A stretch of 61,378 bases of DNA, counting the filler, from Choristocarpus tenellus KU-1152 (Eukaryota > Protista > Phaeophyceae): the NCBI GenBank assembly GCA_964200185.2. It is 7 parts of 7 records of this genome, joined end to end, with 100 filler letters (N's around TTAATTAATTAA, not from the genome) between each part and the next. Parts side by side here need not be neighbours in the genome. Positions count along the whole stretch, not along the records: positions 37,189 to 54,046 come from CAXNAD020000754.1; 6 more parts are not named here. The stretch is one strand, 5' to 3'. The notes under the pieces are model-generated. The model was not told the origin of the DNA and did no database searches. It saw nothing but the letters and a program-made list of their open reading frames with translations. Shown here in pieces: positions 37,756 through 48,929 of the stretch. Position 1 is the stretch's first letter, and every line of letters begins with the position of its first letter. The position numbers were made by a program, and so were the translations under genes.

Positions 37756-39519
37756 CTATGTTGATAATGGAGGAGGCCGAGGTGGGATGATTCTCGTTAG
37801 CACAATACCATCTTCCTTATATTGTTCATCCAGCATCCCCGGATCCATATCTTCACAGGTGAAACCCATATTCCTCAACGAGGAAAAGAAGAATGCACCT
37901 CCATCCCCTGCCCATCGCCTCTCATGACAGCTCAGCACCAATGAAGCACCCCTCCCCCTCCTGTCTCCGCCCTGTTCTATATCATGTTCCTTGCTGCTAG
38001 ACTCTCTATTGCTCCCATCCCCACAACTGCCGCAACAAATATTCTGCAGCGTGGATGCGAGGGCGAACGCTGTTGATTGGTCACCATAGAGCAGATCTGA
38101 GCAAAGGACAATCCCCTCTGGGTCCAGCCAGGATGCCATTCTCACAGCCTCTGTCTCATCCCCCCACCCCAGCACAGCCCCAGAGACAGTGCCTGCAACA
38201 GAAGGGTTGAGCACAATCGATCGCTCTATTGCTGGAAGGCCCTCCTCCTGTAGTTTGGGAGTCAACATTGAAGAGGGGTCAAGGGGGGAGGGGTGAACTG
38301 ACGGCATCAACCCCTCGCGTTCCACTACTCCTTGAAGCAAAGTCACATCACGTTTTTAGGAGGGAAAGTCTCAAAGTAAACACAGTAATTGGAGGAATCC
38401 TTGTGCTTGAGCGTATGGCTATTGGTCGTCAATGATGCACAGCCTTATCAGATGTGCCAACCTCTGCGAGACGAATAGGCCCCTGATCTTAACCCTCAAC
38501 ACGGCTGGGGACTGATTTCAATAACTCTCCCCATGGCTTCCAATAATGTCACACCATGTCTGTCAGAACGACTCCTTCCGCTCCCAAGACTGCTGCAGCG
38601 ATCCCAGGCAGACCGACGCCACAACCAAGTTCAAGTACCCTCTTTCCTTCAATCTCCTGTGGAGAGGCAAAACGCATGGGCCAATCAGACTACTGGCTTG
38701 AGTGTGGCAACACGACAGGTGCTAAATAATAGTGCAGGGCGTTCCTTCTGATTCAATGGGTTGCGTGTTGTGCCCAGCTACAAACTCAGCAATCCGTTGA
38801 GATTAATTGTCTCATAACTGCTTCAATTTAAGCTAAGAAACGAACAGGCCGAAGATGTCATGGCATGACCATGAATTGAACATATCGAGCTCGCACCTCG
38901 GGTGACTTCTGGAGGTAGTCAACAAGCACCAGGGAGCAGTCCCAAGCCCTGTATTGCTGCCCCGGGGCGTGTTCAAAAATAATAGGACCTCTACAAGTTT
39001 CGACTCGACCCTTTCCCCCACCCTGCGAATTCATGGCAAAGGGGAAAGGGCGCCACATTCGTAAGAGCCAGAGAACATCAGAGATGTGTTGGAACCAACC
39101 TGATGGACCAGCAACTATCATTGAGTAGACGAGACTTTCATTATGATATCCCCGGTCATAAACGAAACGCCTTACATCGTACAAGTCAGCTTGCGTGAGA
39201 CGCCATCCCCTCTGCTGTCTCTTAGACGCAAAGGTAATCGCAGCCTTGAGCTTCTGTTGTTGACGCTCCCCATCTTCAAAAAAATCTCCCTCTATCGCTT
39301 CCAACCAGCCCTGGTTTTATCATGTTCAACATTCACGGTTCAAGGAGAGGTGGTCAAAATAGAATTGCAATATCAAAACATCAACACTTGGTCTCTTCTG
39401 TGAGAAACAGTACACCAACATAATAGGTTGGCAAGGCCCCCACCTCATCCCATCAATGAGGAGGAAGTGGTCCTCCACCTCTAACCCACCTCACTATCAC
39501 TGCTCGACAAATCCCCCAT
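37756..39519 (-). CDS. SAM-dependent protein-lysine methyltransferase (family 16, METTL21-like), ~345 aa
   Basis: complement(join(37756..38247,38555..38656,38897..39310,39490..39519)); all GT-AG, phase 0. Motifs AWDCSLVLVDYL, VLELGCGVGLPG, VVLTD, LGWG, CSDLLY. Confidence 0.9.
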
Positions 39520-39870: not shown

Positions 39871-41465
39871 ATGAACTCTCCAGGTGGAGACGAGACCACC
39901 CCTCTACTTGAGAGGGAAAGAAGGCCTGGTCGGAGTAATGATGGTCCCTTAGTCTACCTCGAGAGGTTTCCCAGGAGAATGGTCGAGGTCTGCTATGGAT
40001 ATTCCCTCTCAGTGGTCATTACAGCAGTACTTGGAGCGGTGAGTATCCAGACTTTCGGTCACAATCCCCGAGTGTATTGGAGTAGATATATTTCGTGGCA
40101 TTACATTTTTTCCGATTCTCGTCTTGTTCCTTTGCTACAATTCTAATGTATCAGCATCGAAGAGTGTATCTACTGTTTGTTGAACCGTGGATGTGTTCCC
40201 TTCCTGATTTGTAGAGGGGGGCACTAGGGAGAGAATTTTATCAAGTACAACCCTCCGCTGTTGACATGATATATAATACTCCTATACAACAGGTGACCAC
40301 TGGTGGTGTGGTGAGTTTTCCCTCGGTAGTTTACATCTTCCCTATACTGGTGGCCCAAATCTGGCTCGTGGTCGAGCTGATTGTTGCTTATAAGTGCATG
40401 GGGCGCGCAATGCAGGGTGGGAACAGCCCACCTAGACGTCGGGGACGGCAGTCACGGCCCACCCCTTCCCGCACTCGGGTGGAGGAAAGAGGGGAATCGA
40501 GAGGCAGACGTAGAGAGAGCCAGTCGCGTTCGCGCAAGCCCGTCAGTCCTAGGATTCGCATCATTGGTCTTGTACGGCTGTGGTACAAGTTATGGGCGGC
40601 ATTGGTGCTGGCTGCCCTTGTCTTGGGGACGTTCGAGGGCCTTCTGATGGCAAGGATACTAGGAACGCCTTCTTCACAATTGAAAACGAGCGTAGTCATT
40701 AGCCCCCTCCTGGCTGGACTTGCCCTATCTGTCTTTTTTGCTGTTGTTATCCGCAATCTAGGTAAGACCAAGGTGAGCCTGTTGGGACTCACCATCCTCT
40801 TCCTATCTTTGCTCAGCGCCAAACTGGATGCCACGGAGAAACATCAGGAAGAACGTAAAAGTTACAAGCCGGTTGCATCCTATTCTTGGTTGGTAGTGTT
40901 TATCCCAGTATGGATTGGTGCCGGAGTGTTTTTGACAACATACACCAGAATCTTGTGGGGCAGGCGCATTTCACGTGTACTAGAACTCACAGCAGCACAA
41001 GAGGCCGCTAGTGTCGCTGTTGTTGTGGGCACTGCCATTCTGGTCCTTTGTAGTGCCCTGCTCTGCCACCTTTTGGTGGGTGGGTGGTTAGTATGGAATG
41101 GTGGGTCATTGGTGAATGTCTCCTCAGCTACTCTCACGGCGACCTTGCTGTTGGCAGCAACGGGAGGGGCGACGATTGCTTGTGGGATTCGTCAGGTGTT
41201 CCTGGAGCGGGTGGCTGCACTGGTGGAGACTGGTGTCCCTGATTCTATACCGCTGCCTGTATCCTACAGTAATGAGTCACACGGGTGGGTTGCAGATGAG
41301 GGGGCGTTGAAATATCTGTCTGTATTCCTGTTGGGGACAGTTAGGCAACGGCAGGCAATACATGGTGAGGATGTAAGATTTAATGAGGAAGGAATGCAAG
41401 GTAATAGGTATGCTGGGGAGGTTCTCCCAAGCTGGAAGAACTCGTCAGATGCCTCGCCTACATGA
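39871..41465 (+). CDS. Multi-pass membrane protein, TMEM185/Fragile-X-F-like
   Basis: join(39871..40038,40293..41465); about 7-8 hydrophobic segments; signature LLSAKLD...SWLVVFIPVWI; N-terminal ETTPLL dileucine motif. Confidence 0.75.
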
Positions 41466-42429
41466 TTGCCTACGCCACTGCTTGTACCTTGAAGAATGAG
41501 GAATGCATTTCCAATTTTGAATTATGGGGGACGTGTTTTTTTGCTCTACTTTGATCTTTCTACTCCTGAGATACCCAAATTCTTTGGAGACACACTGTTT
41601 ATAGAATGTAGACTATCGTTTTAGATACCAATATTAGTGTACCTAAGCTGTTATTGCCTGTAATGTGGAGGACAAGATCATATAGAATTGCATAGTTTAG
41701 AGGATTGCTGAAGTAGGGTCTGATAGTAGCCAATGTTTACACATCATTGATATGGATATATATATATATATAATCACCACATGCAGTCTATGCCCATCTT
41801 TCGGTGTACATAGTTGAATCCCACCCATTGTTTCTATGGCTGAATGTGTGCACAAATTACACTTCTGGTTGCTAATTTCAAGATTAGTGCGTAAGGAAAA
41901 AATGATTGGATGAGCCCATTACTTAGGTACAAGTTCTTGATACCCACAAGACTGCTGGGTGGTCTTGTTTCATTTTGCTCTGCTCCAAAAGACAGGTATA
42001 AATGTAGGGTAATCAATTGAGAAGAACAATCACAAAAAACGATTCTCAACAACTCAAGAATTGAGAGTTTTGTAGTGAAGGAACAATAAAATGTGACACA
42101 CACAGGATTGTCCGATCTGGAATATCCATGTGTAGCAACTTGTCACTGTGACAAGGACCACCTCTCGGATCAGTTGGACATAATTGAGCCTTCTCTATTG
42201 GGAGTGATCACACAGTTCCATTGTTCTCTTCTCAGGAGTACGTAGAGAAGCAGTAGTGGTTGATCATGGAACACAGGATACGGGGATGTGTACACGTTTA
42301 CAACCTTTTCTAAATGCACCTTCAACAAGAAATTCAAAAGAGTGAAAATGAAACATGAAAGGGAGGAGTGGGGAACAGATAAAATATATCACCACAAATG
42401 TACTGAGCTCGTTTGAATTGCCACTGCCA

Positions 42430-45040
42430 TCATTTACCTCTTTGGAGAATCTTCATCCACCTTTTGTATAGCTGGTTCTCTGCCTCAAATCGACCTTGTG
42501 CACCCAGCCACACTTGAGACATCCCACAGGCAACACGCAGCACAGTGGCTGAGGGCTCCCTTCTTGTAATCTCCCTTGACTCGTCGTCAATTTCTTTCTT
42601 TGCTAACATCCTCCTGGACTGATCTTCTCTTCCAGAGGTGTAACTCTCCCCAGTGGCAGGGGTAAGCGGCTCTGTACTGGATGGAACGACCTCACCCTCA
42701 CTCTTCAATGGTGTTCTGCTACTGGTAGAAGTCTGATGGCGCACCGCATTGCCAGAAGCCAGGTCCTGCAACTCGACCTTGGGATGGATGCTAGTCTTGC
42801 TCTCCTCTACCATTGTTTCCATTGCGCAACCCATAGAAGTCGGCAGGTGTAAATTCTTGCTGCTAGGAAGAGACTGCAGCTTGGTCTCGGAATACACAAC
42901 ATCGCTTATCTCACCATGTTTTGCGGTGATATTGGGAGGATGCATGGCCTTGCTTGGTGCCAAAGCACGAAGCTCAGCCTTGGAATAAACAGCCTTGCCC
43001 ATCTCTTCCGCTGGTTTTGTTGTGGTACTGGCAGGAGTAGCGTACTGTACATTTTTTCTGGAAGTCATGGATCGCAGCTCGGTGAGGGAATACACCAATT
43101 TGCTCGTCATACCCTCTGTTATGGTGATATTGAGAGGGTCCTCTACCTTGCTGGGTGCTAAGGCCCGCAACTCTGTCATGGAATACACCAACTTGACACT
43201 CTGCCTTGCCGCCTGTTGGAGTGCCATATCCCTCACTGTTGTCAAGTTGTAAGCAACCTTTCGTCTTGGTTGTCTACAAAAATCCCCTTCCAGGCCTGCG
43301 GCAACCGTCATTTCACCCTTGGAACTGTCACTCCTCGAGGAACCAGACCCATCCTCAGACTCCCCTGCTGAGGATAGAGCATCAGAGGACTTGTCCTCAT
43401 TGCCCTTCACATCCTCCTCTCCTTCAACGCAGCAAAGACATGGCACACCGGTGAGGGATGCTAGTCCATCTTGGAACCTACTTATGTCTGATGCAGAGAA
43501 GGCAAGCACTTGCTTGTTTTCTGAGAGCTGTCTTGAAATCCATCCCACGTCGTCCTGTGAAAAGGGGAGGAGGGGTAAATATTGGTGTCGGTAGGTATGA
43601 GCAGTGCCTGACCGTCATTACATGTGGAGAAGTGAGGAACAGTGGGAACTTTGTAAGGCATGGTTCTATAGGTACAGAGGCACTCTATTTCTCAGCTGTA
43701 AAAATCAACGCTTATTGCAGGGGCACAATGTGTGCATAGTGTGCTAGTTAGAAAAGTATTTGCCACAAAATGTGCTCTACTTGACGAGAATACGAACAAG
43801 TGTGAGCACTATTAAACAGCTTTCAAAAAGTTGTGCCAATCAAGATAAGACAGCAAGGAATGATGTATCAACACTACACCTGTTTACCGCCAAGGTCGAG
43901 GGAGGTGCTTCAGGATAATACCTTCTGCCTTACAGACAGTGCACCGAACTGTTTTGGGTCCATCTACTAGGCAATCTTCGTCCACATACGACAGAAACGC
44001 CGAGGAAACTGACGATCAACGCACTACCTTGGATCGGCAATCTGAAAAACGCTTAACACATTTAGCCATAATACCACTTCACCTGAAAGATCGGTGCCAT
44101 TAACCAATCAGCAGAATCGACCACCAGTAGTTGAGCTGACCTTGCAATCAACGCCCCCTTCCCCATCAAATACCGCACTCGCCCTGGAGTTCCGACAGCC
44201 ACGTGGCAACCGGTAGCTCCTAGGGATTTGATATCTTCATATGCAGGAATGCCTCCAACAAAAGTGGAACAAACAAAACCTTGCCGGCCAGAGCCGAGTC
44301 TTTGGATTGTATCCTGTTAGTGTTGGGATAGATCTTAGGATTGGTGAAACCGCAAAAAACCGAGCTTGCAAACGTACGCTATTGCCTACATTCGCACTTC
44401 AATCGGGGGCCAGCAGGAGTCAGAGGTCGAGAAATGTTGAAGCACTGGTTGACCACTCCCTTGTGCATCTTACCCACCTTTGTAGATATCGCCATTTCCC
44501 TTGTCCGTGTCAAGACCAATGTTTGCAATATCGCTTTCTGGTTCCATTCTGGGCCACTAGACTCCACGACAGCTCCCCTATCACCCTCACCGTGTTTCCC
44601 GCTACTAGCGATAGATAGGAGATGTGGGCGGAATTTCTCCAGGATGACCACAGCAAAGGTCAGAGTGGTTTTCTTCCCCGACTTTGCCTGGAGATTGCGA
44701 TTGGATGGAGGTGGCCCAAACATCAGTCTGTGCGGTCCTCCGCCACCGAGACTACAGCCAAGCAGAAACTATCTATCACACTTTCCTGTGCAGTATGATT
44801 CAGGGTTCATTGTTTGAAGCATCTTTGCGTTGGTTGTACTCCAGCAATGAGCGTATACACGATGTACATGTGATGGCATCATGCCTTTGGTGATAAGCCC
44901 ACCTGCACGAGGATACTCTCCCCTTTACATCCTTTCTTCCATATTTCAATTTGAAGTGCAGACGGTTTGGAGGCTCCATCAGCCTCCAACGCCTCCAATA
45001 TTGACTGCGATAGTCCCAGTTCCATGTTCTCGAATGCCAT
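42430..45040 (-). CDS. DDX20/Gemin3-like single-RecA pseudo-helicase with C-terminal repeats, ~567 aa
   Basis: complement(join(42430..43554,44083..44313,44478..44687,44903..45040)); all GT-AG, phase 0, no stops. Q motif (PSALQ), VQAKSGKKTT, LVLTRTRE, FVGG, VAVGTPGR, VVDSAD, FQDDVGWI...KQVLAFSAS. Confidence 0.88.
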
Positions 45041-45579
45041 TTCTCAACTACTCACAACTCACAATTGCTGTTTTAGATGAATGGAGCCAGCCTCGCATGT
45101 TTCAGTATATTTGTTGCGCGCAGATGAGTACGTTCGCTTAAAAAACCAACCGTGACCATGTGTACATTCCCTAAAATGATACCCTCCAACTGAACGAAAG
45201 AGGTTCTTCTTGATAAACACAACTATACTGTGGGTCAAAACGGGAAGGCCATTCCATACCGCACCTGGTACCTACAATGTAATAGGCGAACATGGCTCGG
45301 CTTCCTACAAAGTATTGACACCTATGTCTATAATATGACCTCATCCCTCCAGTACATTAGCGTTTCATGTGTTGGTAGTGAGCGTACGGTCATACTTGAT
45401 CCAATTTTCTCTCATGATATTTACTGCTAATAATTGTGAGCGCATTATGATTCGAACTAATATGAGATAATCAATTAATCATCATGCATACGAAAGCAAG
45501 ATGAGTGCTCATCATCCCTCACACGTTCTGTTGTTGTTAGAGGAGTTGGCGTCCTTGAAGTTGAAGGGGAGTAATCGAT

Positions 45580-45690: not shown

Positions 45691-46206
45691 TAGCGCTCTC
45701 GATCGCTAACAAGAGATAGATTGAGGTGATTGGTTGTTTTTAAAACTTTGCATCATTGCCAAAGCAATTCGCCTGGCAAACTCACTACCACCTTGAACGC
45801 ATCTCCCTGATGGATGGCCACCCCCTGGCTGTGATCAGTCCATGCATACCCAAAGAAGTGCTTCAGAACACAGTCAAATCTTCCAAAAGCCTGTACATAG
45901 CAACAAAAACGGGGATGGGGCTCGCATTTCTAAAAAACGACCAATCACAATCAAAACATTGGCATAATTCAAAAACAATGTTAATCGTGTAACAACAACA
46001 GGAAACATATAGTGTTGTTGATGAATGGCAACATGCCATAAAAGGCCACTGTGTAGTAGGCAAAAAAATGAGCAATCTCGCACTCCATAAAACCCTATTC
46101 GGTAGGATAAGTGTTCAGGTGTTCGCCCACATCTGTACCCATCAATGGTCTTTCTAGTGACTCATCAAAGTTCTATTGAAGAAGTCTGATTCCTCTACAG
46201 CTTCAT

Positions 46207-46253
46207 AGGAGGAGGAGGAGGAGGAGGAGGAGGAGGAGGAGGAGGAGGAGGAG
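46207..46253. repeat. (GAG)n microsatellite
   Basis: About 15 perfect triplets. Confidence 0.95.
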
Positions 46254-48929
46254 AACATTTCTTACTCTAAAGCTTGTTTTTGTGAAGCTTGAAAGTGCCA
46301 AATTGTGTAAGCCAATGAGATTTGTTTTTTCACTTGGTATGCAATGGGACAAACTCCTGTTGTACTGTATTTCTGGTGACTGAAGCCATAGACAAAACCA
46401 AGTAGATATACTTGATGGTTGTACAGATTCTCAGGAGGATGATGGTATATACCATAGGTTGCAAACTGTTAATTCACAACGTCCGAACATGAGTCGCCAT
46501 GAATTTGGGTCAAGATACACCACAAGAATCGTTCTTGGGGTGTTTGAAGAGTGTCATTCGTTGGGGGAAAAAATAGGTCCTTCACTTTCATGCTTGTCTG
46601 TAGAAATCAGAACAATATTTATTCAAAAACAGAAAGCACATTAGAACCCTCAAGTGCCCAGTGAATTGACCAAACACCCCCAAACTGCAGTCTTCCTAAA
46701 TAGGAAATGTCCTTTTTTTTGCTGAATACATCGATAGGCAATAGGAAGTGGAGCACCAAAGTTACTGCTTCACCCCATTTGCCATACACACATCAATAGA
46801 TTTGTACATCTGTTGAAAAAAAAAGTTAATTTTCTTGAAACACCTTTTTCAGAACAATTCCCGACATATATAGATGTGAAGTTCTATGAAGTCAAAAAAG
46901 AGAGTAACGAGTGACATCATAGGTCAGGCAATTACAATATTGAAAAAGACAATCCACAAGACAAAAGGGGTTATGTGAGGTGATCATTATCAGATTCACC
47001 ATCCAAAACAGGCAGGATAGGAACCCTCCAATTGTGAGAATTTGGTAAGCACAACCCTATATTTGTGTCAAACATTACAACTACCTATTGACAATGACTG
47101 GTGACAACATGGTTGTTGTAATGTTTGCCTGACATGTGGAACATTGATATACATTCTTGATGTGATGTAAGGATATGGTCTGGGAATATTGCCCTTTTTT
47201 CCTCATCTTGCTATCGGTCTTTGATTTCCAATGGTTAGTAATAACACCTCTAACCTACAACAAAAACTAGGATGTTCTTCAACCATGTGTGAATTTTTGA
47301 TTGGTAGAATCACTCTGGCTTTAGGCTGCTGCAGATACTAAACCCCATAGAGTTTTGGATTGGTATAGAGATAACCAGTGTTTTGAACGGGTCTAATTGA
47401 TCTATTGCCATGGCCCGATTCTCTGCCAGGAGGTGAGGTAGTAGGGATTTTGGAGTAGTGCGAGCTTGATGCCAACTACCACCTCCATTTTACCTGTCGT
47501 ATTCTGAAGTTTACATATATCTAGACACACCCCTTCCTACTGTTCACACAACAGTTGAAAATAAGGACAAGTAGTTCTTTCTCACCTACGGGTAAACATA
47601 CTTAAAATTCCTGTGATGTGAACCCTCTTGTTATCACAACAATAATAAAATATTAGAAATATCTACGCTAGAAGCTGGCACCCACGAACGTTTTACTGGA
47701 TGCGCGCTTGAGAGGGAGGAAAAAAGTGCCAAGCACTGCATACCAGTTACACATGGAGAATACTTCGGACCCACTAATTGACCTCATAGCATCCAACAAA
47801 AGCCATTGTACAGGCGTCACAACTATCACATGGAAAATAAAGTGGACTATATACTGAGCAGAGAACTACAGGGGGCATGAGAGGAAAATCAATGATTACG
47901 CTAGCTCCTTGGCAAGGTGTGCACTATAGATAAAGGGGGCAGTCAAGTGGCCAAAGGCAGATTGATTTGCACCTTCCATAGTGCGGCTTGGCCCATTCAA
48001 AGACATTTGCGCAGCACAAGCAGCTCCTCACCAAAAACACTACACCGCAGGTATCCAAGGTTGAATCACAGATTCACCAGGCACAATACACTGTACTTCG
48101 TACAATGGAGAAAGTTTCACACAACAGAAGAGGCATTGCTAAGGGGGTGCACATCAAGGGCATTCCACAAATATGCGTTCTAACAGACAAGAGGATTAAG
48201 GAAACAACAAATGAGATCAACCTGTAACCTAGGGCAGCAGACCAGCCTTTTTCCATTGATAAGCAGTGAAGTGGTAGATGATAAAACCGGATGAGTTAGT
48301 TACCAAAGACCCGATAAAAACATTCCTTCCAGTACTTCAGTCATGCTAATGCCATCTTGCAGACCCTGCCCCACCTGCAGTAAGAGATGCCTTGATCTGT
48401 AGCCAATCCCCTACCCCTCCCAAAATCCATGATTCACAAAGAAATTCAAATTTCTTTTGAAGACTAAGAACCCAGTCACACCTCACCCCTTCAATCTCTC
48501 CATTTCCCTTGAATTTCTCTCAACCACCTACAGACAACCAACCATAAGGAGAGCCTCTGCAGTAGGCACCCTACATCTCTTTTTCACTCTACTATTAAAT
48601 GGAGACTCAATAAAAATCTTCGCATCAAAGCCTGAAAGTCTTGCAGTAAGTCACAAGACCAGCTACAACAGCATCACACACAGTGCTAGATGCCTGTACC
48701 AACAATATCACTTCCTGGAACATCCTCGGTAAAGCATAGACCAGCCAGAATTTGGTACATGCCACGGAAGCTGGACAGGCCTGATGTGTGGTAGGATAGA
48801 AACGAGCAATTCAACAGATCCCCCTTCACTGCTGGGACTCCCAAGGATTTTGGACTGTGCATGCATCCACCCCCATACATAACAGCAGTTCCAACTGACA
48901 CAATGGTAATACTAATTAAGCACGGCTTC

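Follow-up and report, generated by a model that had tools for sequence, protein, structure and literature searches.

A degenerate, single-domain DEAD-box protein of Choristocarpus tenellus with a selected array of tandem tyrosine motifs that may dock eIF4E-family proteins

We analysed a minus-strand gene (positions 45040–42430) in a 61,378-nucleotide (nt) stretch of DNA from the phaeophycean Choristocarpus tenellus KU-1152 (GenBank assembly GCA_964200185.2). This stretch, referred to here as the window, consists of 7 parts of 7 records joined end to end, and the gene lies in the part from CAXNAD020000754.1 (37,189 to 54,046). Results showed that the gene is expressed and encodes half of a helicase core, and that the long tail following this core carries a real, selected docking array of short tyrosine motifs resembling those that bind eIF4E. 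We propose, at a probability of roughly 0.4 that draws on a predicted complex, that the product is a pseudo-helicase scaffold in which each intact motif copy docks a protein of the eIF4E family. The gene had been interpreted before from its bases alone (hereafter the sequence-only reading), and we take up those claims where our results bear on them.

The gene model was derived from six-frame translation and the raw sequence. It has four exons with exact GT..AG junctions and about 567 codons open across them, giving a product of about 567 amino acids (aa). In-frame stops lie upstream of the exon 1 ATG, and the exon 4 open reading frame (ORF) runs from 43548 to 42430 on the minus strand, with the stop codon at 42432–42430. 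The parts of the gene are:

44903–45040, minus strand: exon 1, 46 aa, beginning MAFENM; start of the RecA1 domain, with the Q-motif-like GASKPSALQ
44478–44687, minus strand: exon 2, 70 aa; degenerate Walker A/motif I AKSGKKTT and motif Ia-like TRTREMA
44083–44313, minus strand: exon 3, 77 aa; GG, TPGR (motif Ib) and VVDSAD at the place of motif II
43420–43554, minus strand: first part of exon 4; end of RecA1, with FSAS at the place of motif III (SAT)
42433–43554, minus strand: exon 4, 374 aa; end of RecA1, acidic/Ser-rich linker, repeat array and C-terminal helix

Three public runs of one study (X1, X2, and X3) carry the stretch. The X1 and X2 contigs are unspliced and genome-like, and X3 has the properties of an RNA library. 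One X3 contig, 480 nt long and with a depth of 233, joins 43528–43553 to 44082–44312, and the latter to 44477–44690. At both joints (43553/44082 and 44312/44477, cut +1) the CT..AC of the plus strand corresponds to GT..AG on the minus strand and, given the +1 ambiguity of the cut, the joints match the predicted exon 4/3 and exon 3/2 boundaries exactly. Two introns are confirmed by spliced X3 contigs, which support both ends of exon 3 and the 3′ boundary of exon 2; X3 contigs located in introns had depths of 5–11 vs. 233 for the spliced contig. The latter has a 9-nt loose end at 44690 that agrees with the terminal bases of exon 1. As a further X3 contig (3266 nt, depth 265) spans 41000–43557 without any joint, exon 4 was read uninterrupted to its stop.

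To characterize the helicase-like part, domain, structure, and homology searches were run exon by exon. Exon 3 matched the Pfam DEAD family with an E value of 5.5e-5 and 23.4 bits, under the 26-bit gathering cut-off. Its best PDB match was domain 1 of DDX20/Gemin3 (2oxc, E 9.9e-9, 38.4 bits), with eIF4A3 next at 30 bits. Exon 1 aligned weakly with the Q-motif region of eIF4A3 (E 0.7, not significant alone). On their own, exon 2 and the first 49 aa of exon 4 had no match in Pfam or PDB, and exon 4 as a whole matched no Pfam family at all. GASKPSALQ, TRTREMA, VGG, TPGR, and FSAS occur in the order expected of RecA1, as read exon-wise and with the DEAD score of exon 3 below the cut-off. The motifs compare with those of the family as follows:

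Motif Q: GASKPSALQ (translation)
Motif I: AKSGKKTT vs. SGTGKT (consensus AQSGTGKT; AxxGxGKT) (translation)
Motif Ia: TRTREMA (translation)
Motif Ib: TPGR vs. TPGR (translation)
Motif II: VVDSAD vs. DEAD, aligned to ILDEAD of DDX20 (translation and PDB alignment)
Motif III: FSAS vs. SAT (translation)

An ungapped comparison with eIF4A3 puts Lys-Thr at the Gly-Lys position of Walker A, and the D-E-A-D of an active enzyme is not preserved. After motif III the first domain continues for about 25 residues, and then low-complexity sequence begins; residues 2–42 of exon 4 were predicted by AlphaFold2 (AF2), with low confidence, to form a helix-strand-helix-strand succession. The second RecA-like domain of an active DEAD-box helicase (Helicase_C, motifs IV–VI) was not found, and the downstream minus-strand ORFs gave no Helicase_C signal. 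As judged from the translation, the core consists of one RecA1-type domain, belonging to the DDX20/eIF4A branch, that has lost the P-loop glycine-lysine and the catalytic glutamate. Because the Walker A and DEAD residues are lost and there is no RecA2, ATP hydrolysis and helicase-style clamping of RNA should be impossible. The sequence-only reading had described a dead DEAD-box domain with the second helicase domain missing. AKSGKKTT, VVDSAD, and FSAS, placed in an expressed gene by the spliced X3 contigs, bear out the former; the lack of a Pfam match in exon 4, the joint-free X3 contig, and the absence of Helicase_C downstream bear out the latter.

This domain may belong to a Gemin3 orthologue or to a derived eIF4A-like paralogue; exon 3 favours DDX20 and exon 1, weakly, eIF4A3. 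With DDX20/Gemin3 the protein has in common the top structural match of exon 3, including the stretch CH[IV]AVG[ST]PGR, as well as the layout of a helicase core and, behind it, a long tail without a family match. However, DDX20 keeps both RecA domains and intact ATPase motifs, whereas the protein described here has only the first domain, and orthology would rest on the match of one 77-aa exon, with eIF4A3 close behind. A second point of comparison is Utp25/Def, a pseudohelicase with a DEAD-box-like fold whose catalytic motifs are dispensable or degenerate and which is used as a scaffold (PMC9539457). The degenerate motifs within such a fold are shared, yet Utp25 retains both RecA-like domains and the C. 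tenellus protein only the first. The dead RecA1 might serve as an attachment point for a partner of the MIF4G or Gemin type.

The tail encoded by exon 4 contains the repeat array, which spans 43254–42760 of the window, inside the 42750–43262 given by the sequence-only reading. Six copies were distinguished, four of them good and two degenerate:

43225–43254, minus strand: copy Z (degenerate), AYNLTTVRDM, from exon-4 residue A101; Tyr kept, Leu-6 replaced by Val
43159–43188, minus strand: copy A1, VYSMTELRAL followed by APSK, from V123
43066–43095, minus strand: copy B1, VYSLTELRSM, from V154
42961–42990, minus strand: copy A2, VYSKAELRAL followed by APSK, from V189; the copy docked on eIF4E below
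42868–42897, minus strand: copy B2, VYSETKLQSL, from V220
42760–42789, minus strand: copy C (degenerate), IHPKVELQDL, from I256; Tyr replaced by His and Ser by Pro

Successive Tyr residues (His in the last copy) are spaced by 31/35/31/36 aa. The pattern VYS...L..[LM] occurs 4 times, whereas none of 20000 composition-preserving shuffles contained it more than once; Y....L also has 4 matches, a number reached by 51 of 20000 shuffles. The array is a duplicated 66-aa unit, as residues 121–173 and 187–239 align gap-free over 53 aa with a score of 127, vs. 27.6 ± 5.7 for shuffles (z about 17). Tandem Repeats Finder detected no array at the DNA level, owing to the age of the copies, whose identity has fallen to about 65%. 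Counting from Tyr, a hydrophobic residue at −2, V at −1, Y at 0, S at +1, L at +5, R/Q at +6, A/S at +7, L/M at +8, and K at +12 are (near-)invariant in the four good copies, which gives the consensus [LAV]-V-Y-S-x-x-[EK]-L-[RQ]-[AS]-[LM]-x-x-x-K, intact in 4 copies and decayed in 2. The 374 residues of exon 4 include 48 S, 33 E, and 28 T. The repeats had been described from the sequence alone as five copies plus a degenerate AYNLTTVRDM with this spacing, forming a duplicated dimer of about 66 aa in S/T/E-rich low-complexity surroundings, and our results agree in full; all six peptides are present in the ORF translation. By inspection, none of several known motifs fits all copies: LC3-interacting region (LIR), immunoreceptor tyrosine-based inhibitory motif (ITIM), YxxPhi, nuclear export signal (NES), MIT-interacting motif 1 (MIM1), ubiquitin-interacting motif (UIM), or the PxIxIT-like PLNITIT. 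Scans of the piece for Rfam families and tRNAs gave no hits.

To examine the constraint on the array, we used the two internal units as paralogues and estimated non-synonymous (dN) and synonymous (dS) divergence between them from Nei-Gojobori counts:

Motif A (VYSxxELRALAPSK): dN 0.10, dS 1.88
Motif B: dN 0.34, dS 0.52
Spacers: dN 0.61, dS 0.45

In motif A, 12 of 14 residues are kept in the face of 7 synonymous differences over about 10 synonymous sites. Residue identity between the units amounts to 18/24 in the cores vs. 11/29 in the spacers (Fisher p 0.012), and the core recurs in both half-units, so that all 4 good copies preserve V, Y, S, L, [LM], and K. These values, although based on small numbers, point to purifying selection on the cores since an ancient duplication, strongest on the A-type copy, with the spacers having drifted. 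The expectation that the Y/L cores would be more conserved than their spacers therefore holds between the internal units.

The structure of the tail was predicted with AF2 in single-sequence mode, i.e., with no alignment, which makes it weak evidence. Exon 4 obtained a mean predicted local distance difference test score (pLDDT) of 36.7 and no fold, with values below 50 across the tail. Short helices were predicted at residues 126–130 (copy A1) and 192–196 (copy A2), corresponding to the xxELR part of the A copies, and a longer one at residues 104–118, with copy Z at its start. The sole part of the tail with moderate confidence is a C-terminal amphipathic helix:

42439–42504, minus strand: C-terminal amphipathic helix, exon-4 residues 351–372; AF2 pLDDT 60–78 over the last three 10-residue blocks

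The prediction fits a disordered tail bearing short linear motifs.

Proteins that bind eIF4E carry the consensus Y-X4-L-phi, where phi is hydrophobic (PMC4164784, PMC8558276), or the extended form YX(R/K)X2L-phi-X2(R/K/Q) (PMC8558276). The residue at −2 from Tyr is Ile in 4E-BP1 and Tyr in GIGYF (PMC5538437), and non-canonical motifs binding the lateral surface lie 12–30 residues downstream (PMC5538437, PMC4164784). Y-x4-L-phi occurs so often in proteins that simply finding it is not informative (PMC3763552). In the array, Tyr occupies position 1 in the four good copies and in Z, with His in C, while Leu is found at position 6 in the four good copies and in C, with Val in Z. The copies lie in a predicted disordered region, with a short helix predicted after Tyr. 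They thus share with canonical 4E-binders (eIF4G, 4E-BP1-3, 4E-T, Cup, Thor, yeast p20/Caf20, Eap1, GIGYF1/2) the Tyr-x4-Leu core, disorder, and a short helix, along with a hydrophobic residue at −2 (here L, L, A, V) and, in A2, Lys at position 3. A possible second contact 24–28 residues downstream and the predicted docking to dorsal and lateral surfaces add to the likeness. On the other hand, position 7 holds R/Q and is never hydrophobic, R/K/Q are missing from position 10, and 4–6 tandem copies stand on a helicase-like domain, whereas the known binders have one canonical motif. The eIF4E-binding site of DDX3X, a DEAD-box protein, also has Arg at position 7 (38-YIPPHLR-44; PMC9642913). The N-terminal site of DDX3X/Ded1 shares with the array its occurrence in a DEAD-box-family protein and the Y-x4-L-R pattern; it differs in being one Pro-rich site on an active two-domain helicase, as opposed to several helical, proline-free copies on a dead single domain. 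The conserved R/Q at position 7 would mark a non-canonical class of such motifs. Although eIF4E binders are diverse, a literature phrase search returned nothing beyond "two eIF4E-binding motifs" in one protein.

To evaluate eIF4E binding, we predicted the complex of exon-4 residues 181–219 (copy A2 and 21 downstream residues) with P0119, an eIF4E-family protein of 202 aa (Pfam IF4E, E 1.4e-44) whose best PDB relative is human 4EHP (E 6e-30). The receptor was reached through the degenerate pattern FxxxVxPxWEDExN, which gave 9 loci in viral contigs, one of which (L008) led to 293 metatranscriptome eIF4E proteins. The giant-virus homologues at the other loci (L001–L007, L009) were rejected as docking partners for being too divergent. 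The complex scored 0.74, while the three controls, two unrelated 39-residue partners and an unrelated receptor, gave 0.00–0.01. The pass mark is reached by 51 of 78 solved complexes and by 2 of 108 mismatched pairs. Docking runs agreed in at least 78% of contacts, with a partner pLDDT of at least 63.

In the predicted complex, the contacts with the lowest error are those of Y190 and L195 with P0119 residues 22–23, 63, 66, and 125–131; K192 touches E122, and L198 and A199 touch residues 63–67. On P0119, residues 20–23 (TKLQ) are the equivalent of HPLQ, the I-E-x-F-W-A stretch corresponds to V69 to W73, with 66–68 (FWA) as the equivalent of W73, and 125–131 lie in helix α2; these contacts make up the canonical dorsal site. 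Such dorsal contacts, including that from Lys at position 3 to Glu, are found in real complexes (PMC8558276). R196 is not among the confident contacts. Residues 214–218, located 24–28 residues after Tyr and hence inside the 12–30-residue range of non-canonical lateral-surface motifs, touch P0119 79–85; their sequence, GEISD, is weakly hydrophobic. The prediction supports eIF4E binding as distinct from showing it. Because it was a strong pass in canonical register with controls at zero, we raised the probability of the eIF4E reading from about 0.1–0.15 before docking to about 0.4.

The source of the receptor also yielded observations of its own. L008:2–2779 (+), on an IMG/VR contig of 6218 nt filed as viral, encodes an eIF4E domain that continues in frame into about 760 aa without a Pfam family. 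The domain is 96% identical to eIF4E proteins of about 285 aa from metatranscriptome contigs of about 1.1 kb, so L008 is either a virus with a host-like eIF4E in a long ORF or a chimeric assembly. L001–L007 and L009, on IMG/VR giant-virus contigs, encode divergent eIF4E homologues of about 160–190 aa (L005: Pfam IF4E, E 1.8e-20).

According to the interpretation we propose, each intact copy would be a docking site for one eIF4E-family molecule (eIF4E or 4EHP). Tyr would lie against the HPL-equivalent strand, Leu-6 and Leu-9 on helices α1 and α2 of the dorsal surface, and the stretch 24–28 residues further on would make contact with the lateral surface, in the manner of 4E-BPs, 4E-T, p20, and GIGYF. 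The copies would compete with eIF4G and gather several cap-bound messenger ribonucleoprotein particles (mRNPs) on an inert helicase-like adaptor, and the protein may act as a repressor or a granule scaffold. We infer a possible role in translational repression, as the sequence-only reading did. A broader version, which we consider doubtful, is that the protein represents an undescribed class of regulators of cap-binding proteins. In this class a single-domain DEAD-box remnant would carry 4–5 Y-x4-L-[R/Q] helices, each binding one eIF4E/4EHP, and would gather mRNPs into a repressed particle or condensate; R/Q would define a new motif sub-type, related to YIPPHLR of DDX3.

Several points weigh against the eIF4E interpretation. 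Position 7, hydrophobic (L/M/F) in the canonical motif, holds R, R, R, and Q in the good copies and Q and R in the degenerate ones, a departure which the sequence-only reading had already noted. The extended consensus is not followed either, with M, L, K, and E at position 3 (only A2 fits) and A, T, A, and P at position 10. P0119, which is 4EHP-like, comes from the metatranscriptome of an unrelated protist and is not the eIF4E of Choristocarpus itself. Docking covers one copy, A2, and its calibration covers neither peptides nor disordered chains. Many eIF4E-peptide complexes have been solved, and the pass may reflect likeness to, or memory of, these structures rather than binding. The dN/dS estimates rest on 14–29 codons, the RecA1 domain was assigned exon by exon, and no orthologue of the tail that would speak to conservation across species was found in the searched collections. 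The proposal of an eIF4E/4EHP-docking array thus stands in part: A2 passed (0.74 vs. 0.01) and the cores are conserved, while the hydrophobic position is lacking and the receptor is a borrowed one.

A selected array for a partner outside the eIF4E family is nearly as likely, because the conserved R/Q-7 and K-13 are not features of eIF4E motifs. Such a partner could be an SMN/Gemin-type or other ribonucleoprotein (RNP) assembly component or a lineage-specific protein, with R/Q-7 and K-13 as the specificity residues. The polar residue at position 7 of all six copies and the Lys at +12 (position 13) of all four good ones are not expected of a canonical eIF4E binder. The closest relative of the RecA1 domain is DDX20, and the unconserved C-terminal region of DDX20/Gemin3 binds partners; in addition, the base rate of Y-x4-L is high (PMC3763552). 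Yet no tool suggested any alternative partner, and the eIF4E model passed strongly in the canonical register while its controls stayed at 0.00–0.01. The array would be devoid of specific binding if it were a by-product of the old duplication in a fast-evolving disordered tail, its cores being conserved by chance or for a general need of helix or solubility. We regard this as unlikely. The decay of two copies and the lack of tail relatives in the searched collections would suit it, as would the much weaker constraint on motif B than on motif A and the small site counts; however, 12 of 14 motif A residues are kept at a dS of 1.88 next to spacers whose dN/dS is near or above 1, both half-units contain the same core, and the gene is intact, spliced, and well covered in X3.

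Less probable still is that the units of 31–35 aa are modules of a small folded repeat domain, invisible to a single-sequence prediction made with no alignment. The regular period (31/35/31/36) is in keeping with such modules, and the low AF2 confidence is weak evidence either way. But the spacers are S/T/P/K/E-rich, vary in length, and evolve neutrally, only 4–5 residues per unit are predicted to be helical, and the 39-residue piece was placed on eIF4E as an extended peptide and helix with a pLDDT of at least 63. An error in the gene model, or a decaying pseudogene, appears very improbable. A splice-donor-like AG/GTAAAT overlaps the stop codon (42430–42440, minus strand), from which a second helicase domain might be added by splicing, and contigs drop rare isoforms. 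The contig spanning the stop extends into the convergent neighbour gene as well, which leaves a small chance of a rare isoform. However, X3 contigs have no joint at GGTAAAT, exon 4 and its downstream sequence form one unbranched contig at a depth of 265, the downstream minus-strand ORFs are free of Helicase_C signal, and the junctions are exact over about 567 open codons.

Relatives of the tail were sought in several collections. None was found by a word-index protein search, by phmmer against 1.84 billion representatives, by a feature search of the ESM Atlas, or by a protein-guided scan of metagenome contigs, and the exact degenerate DNA pattern for VYSxxELRALAPSK had no match in metagenome contigs. 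The word-index search also returned no relatives for the neighbouring 399-aa ORF. As the search with this neighbouring gene came up empty too, the blanks reflect an unsampled lineage and say little on the novelty of the tail.

The surroundings of the gene contain further features:

39871–41465, plus strand: convergent neighbour gene, a 91-aa ORF followed by the 399-aa ORF of a multi-pass membrane protein
37756–39304, minus strand: two long ORFs (196 and 148 aa) on the downstream side of the neighbour gene; neither matched a Pfam family at E ≤0.1
46198–46263: (CCT)n/(AGG)n microsatellite, lying upstream of the gene at a distance of about 1.2 kb, at which X1 contigs break
45152–45356: site where several unrelated X1/X2 contigs match only 32–36 nt at 90–95% identity and then diverge, as would be expected of a short dispersed repeat immediately upstream of the gene start

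The 399-aa ORF has a weak match to Pfam TMEM185A (Fragile-X-F; E 0.0013, below the cut-off). In X3, one contig spans the neighbour gene together with exon 4, and the two 3′ ends abut or overlap.

eIF4E-binding proteins are main switches of cap-dependent translation and, to our knowledge, each known binder has a single canonical motif, sometimes with auxiliary contacts. The weight of our finding is limited by the orphan nature of the tail and by functional evidence that is all computational. Should each copy dock eIF4E-family proteins as proposed, the protein would be a multivalent one for cap-bound mRNPs, an architecture of the type from which repressive granules are built, and the hydrophobic position of the motif could be a conserved Arg or Gln. 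Should it not, the orphan tail would still bear a motif array that is real and under selection, of modest interest. Whatever the partner, a DEAD-box protein of which only the dead first RecA domain is left, put to new use as a scaffold, would be a clear addition to the small set of pseudohelicases.

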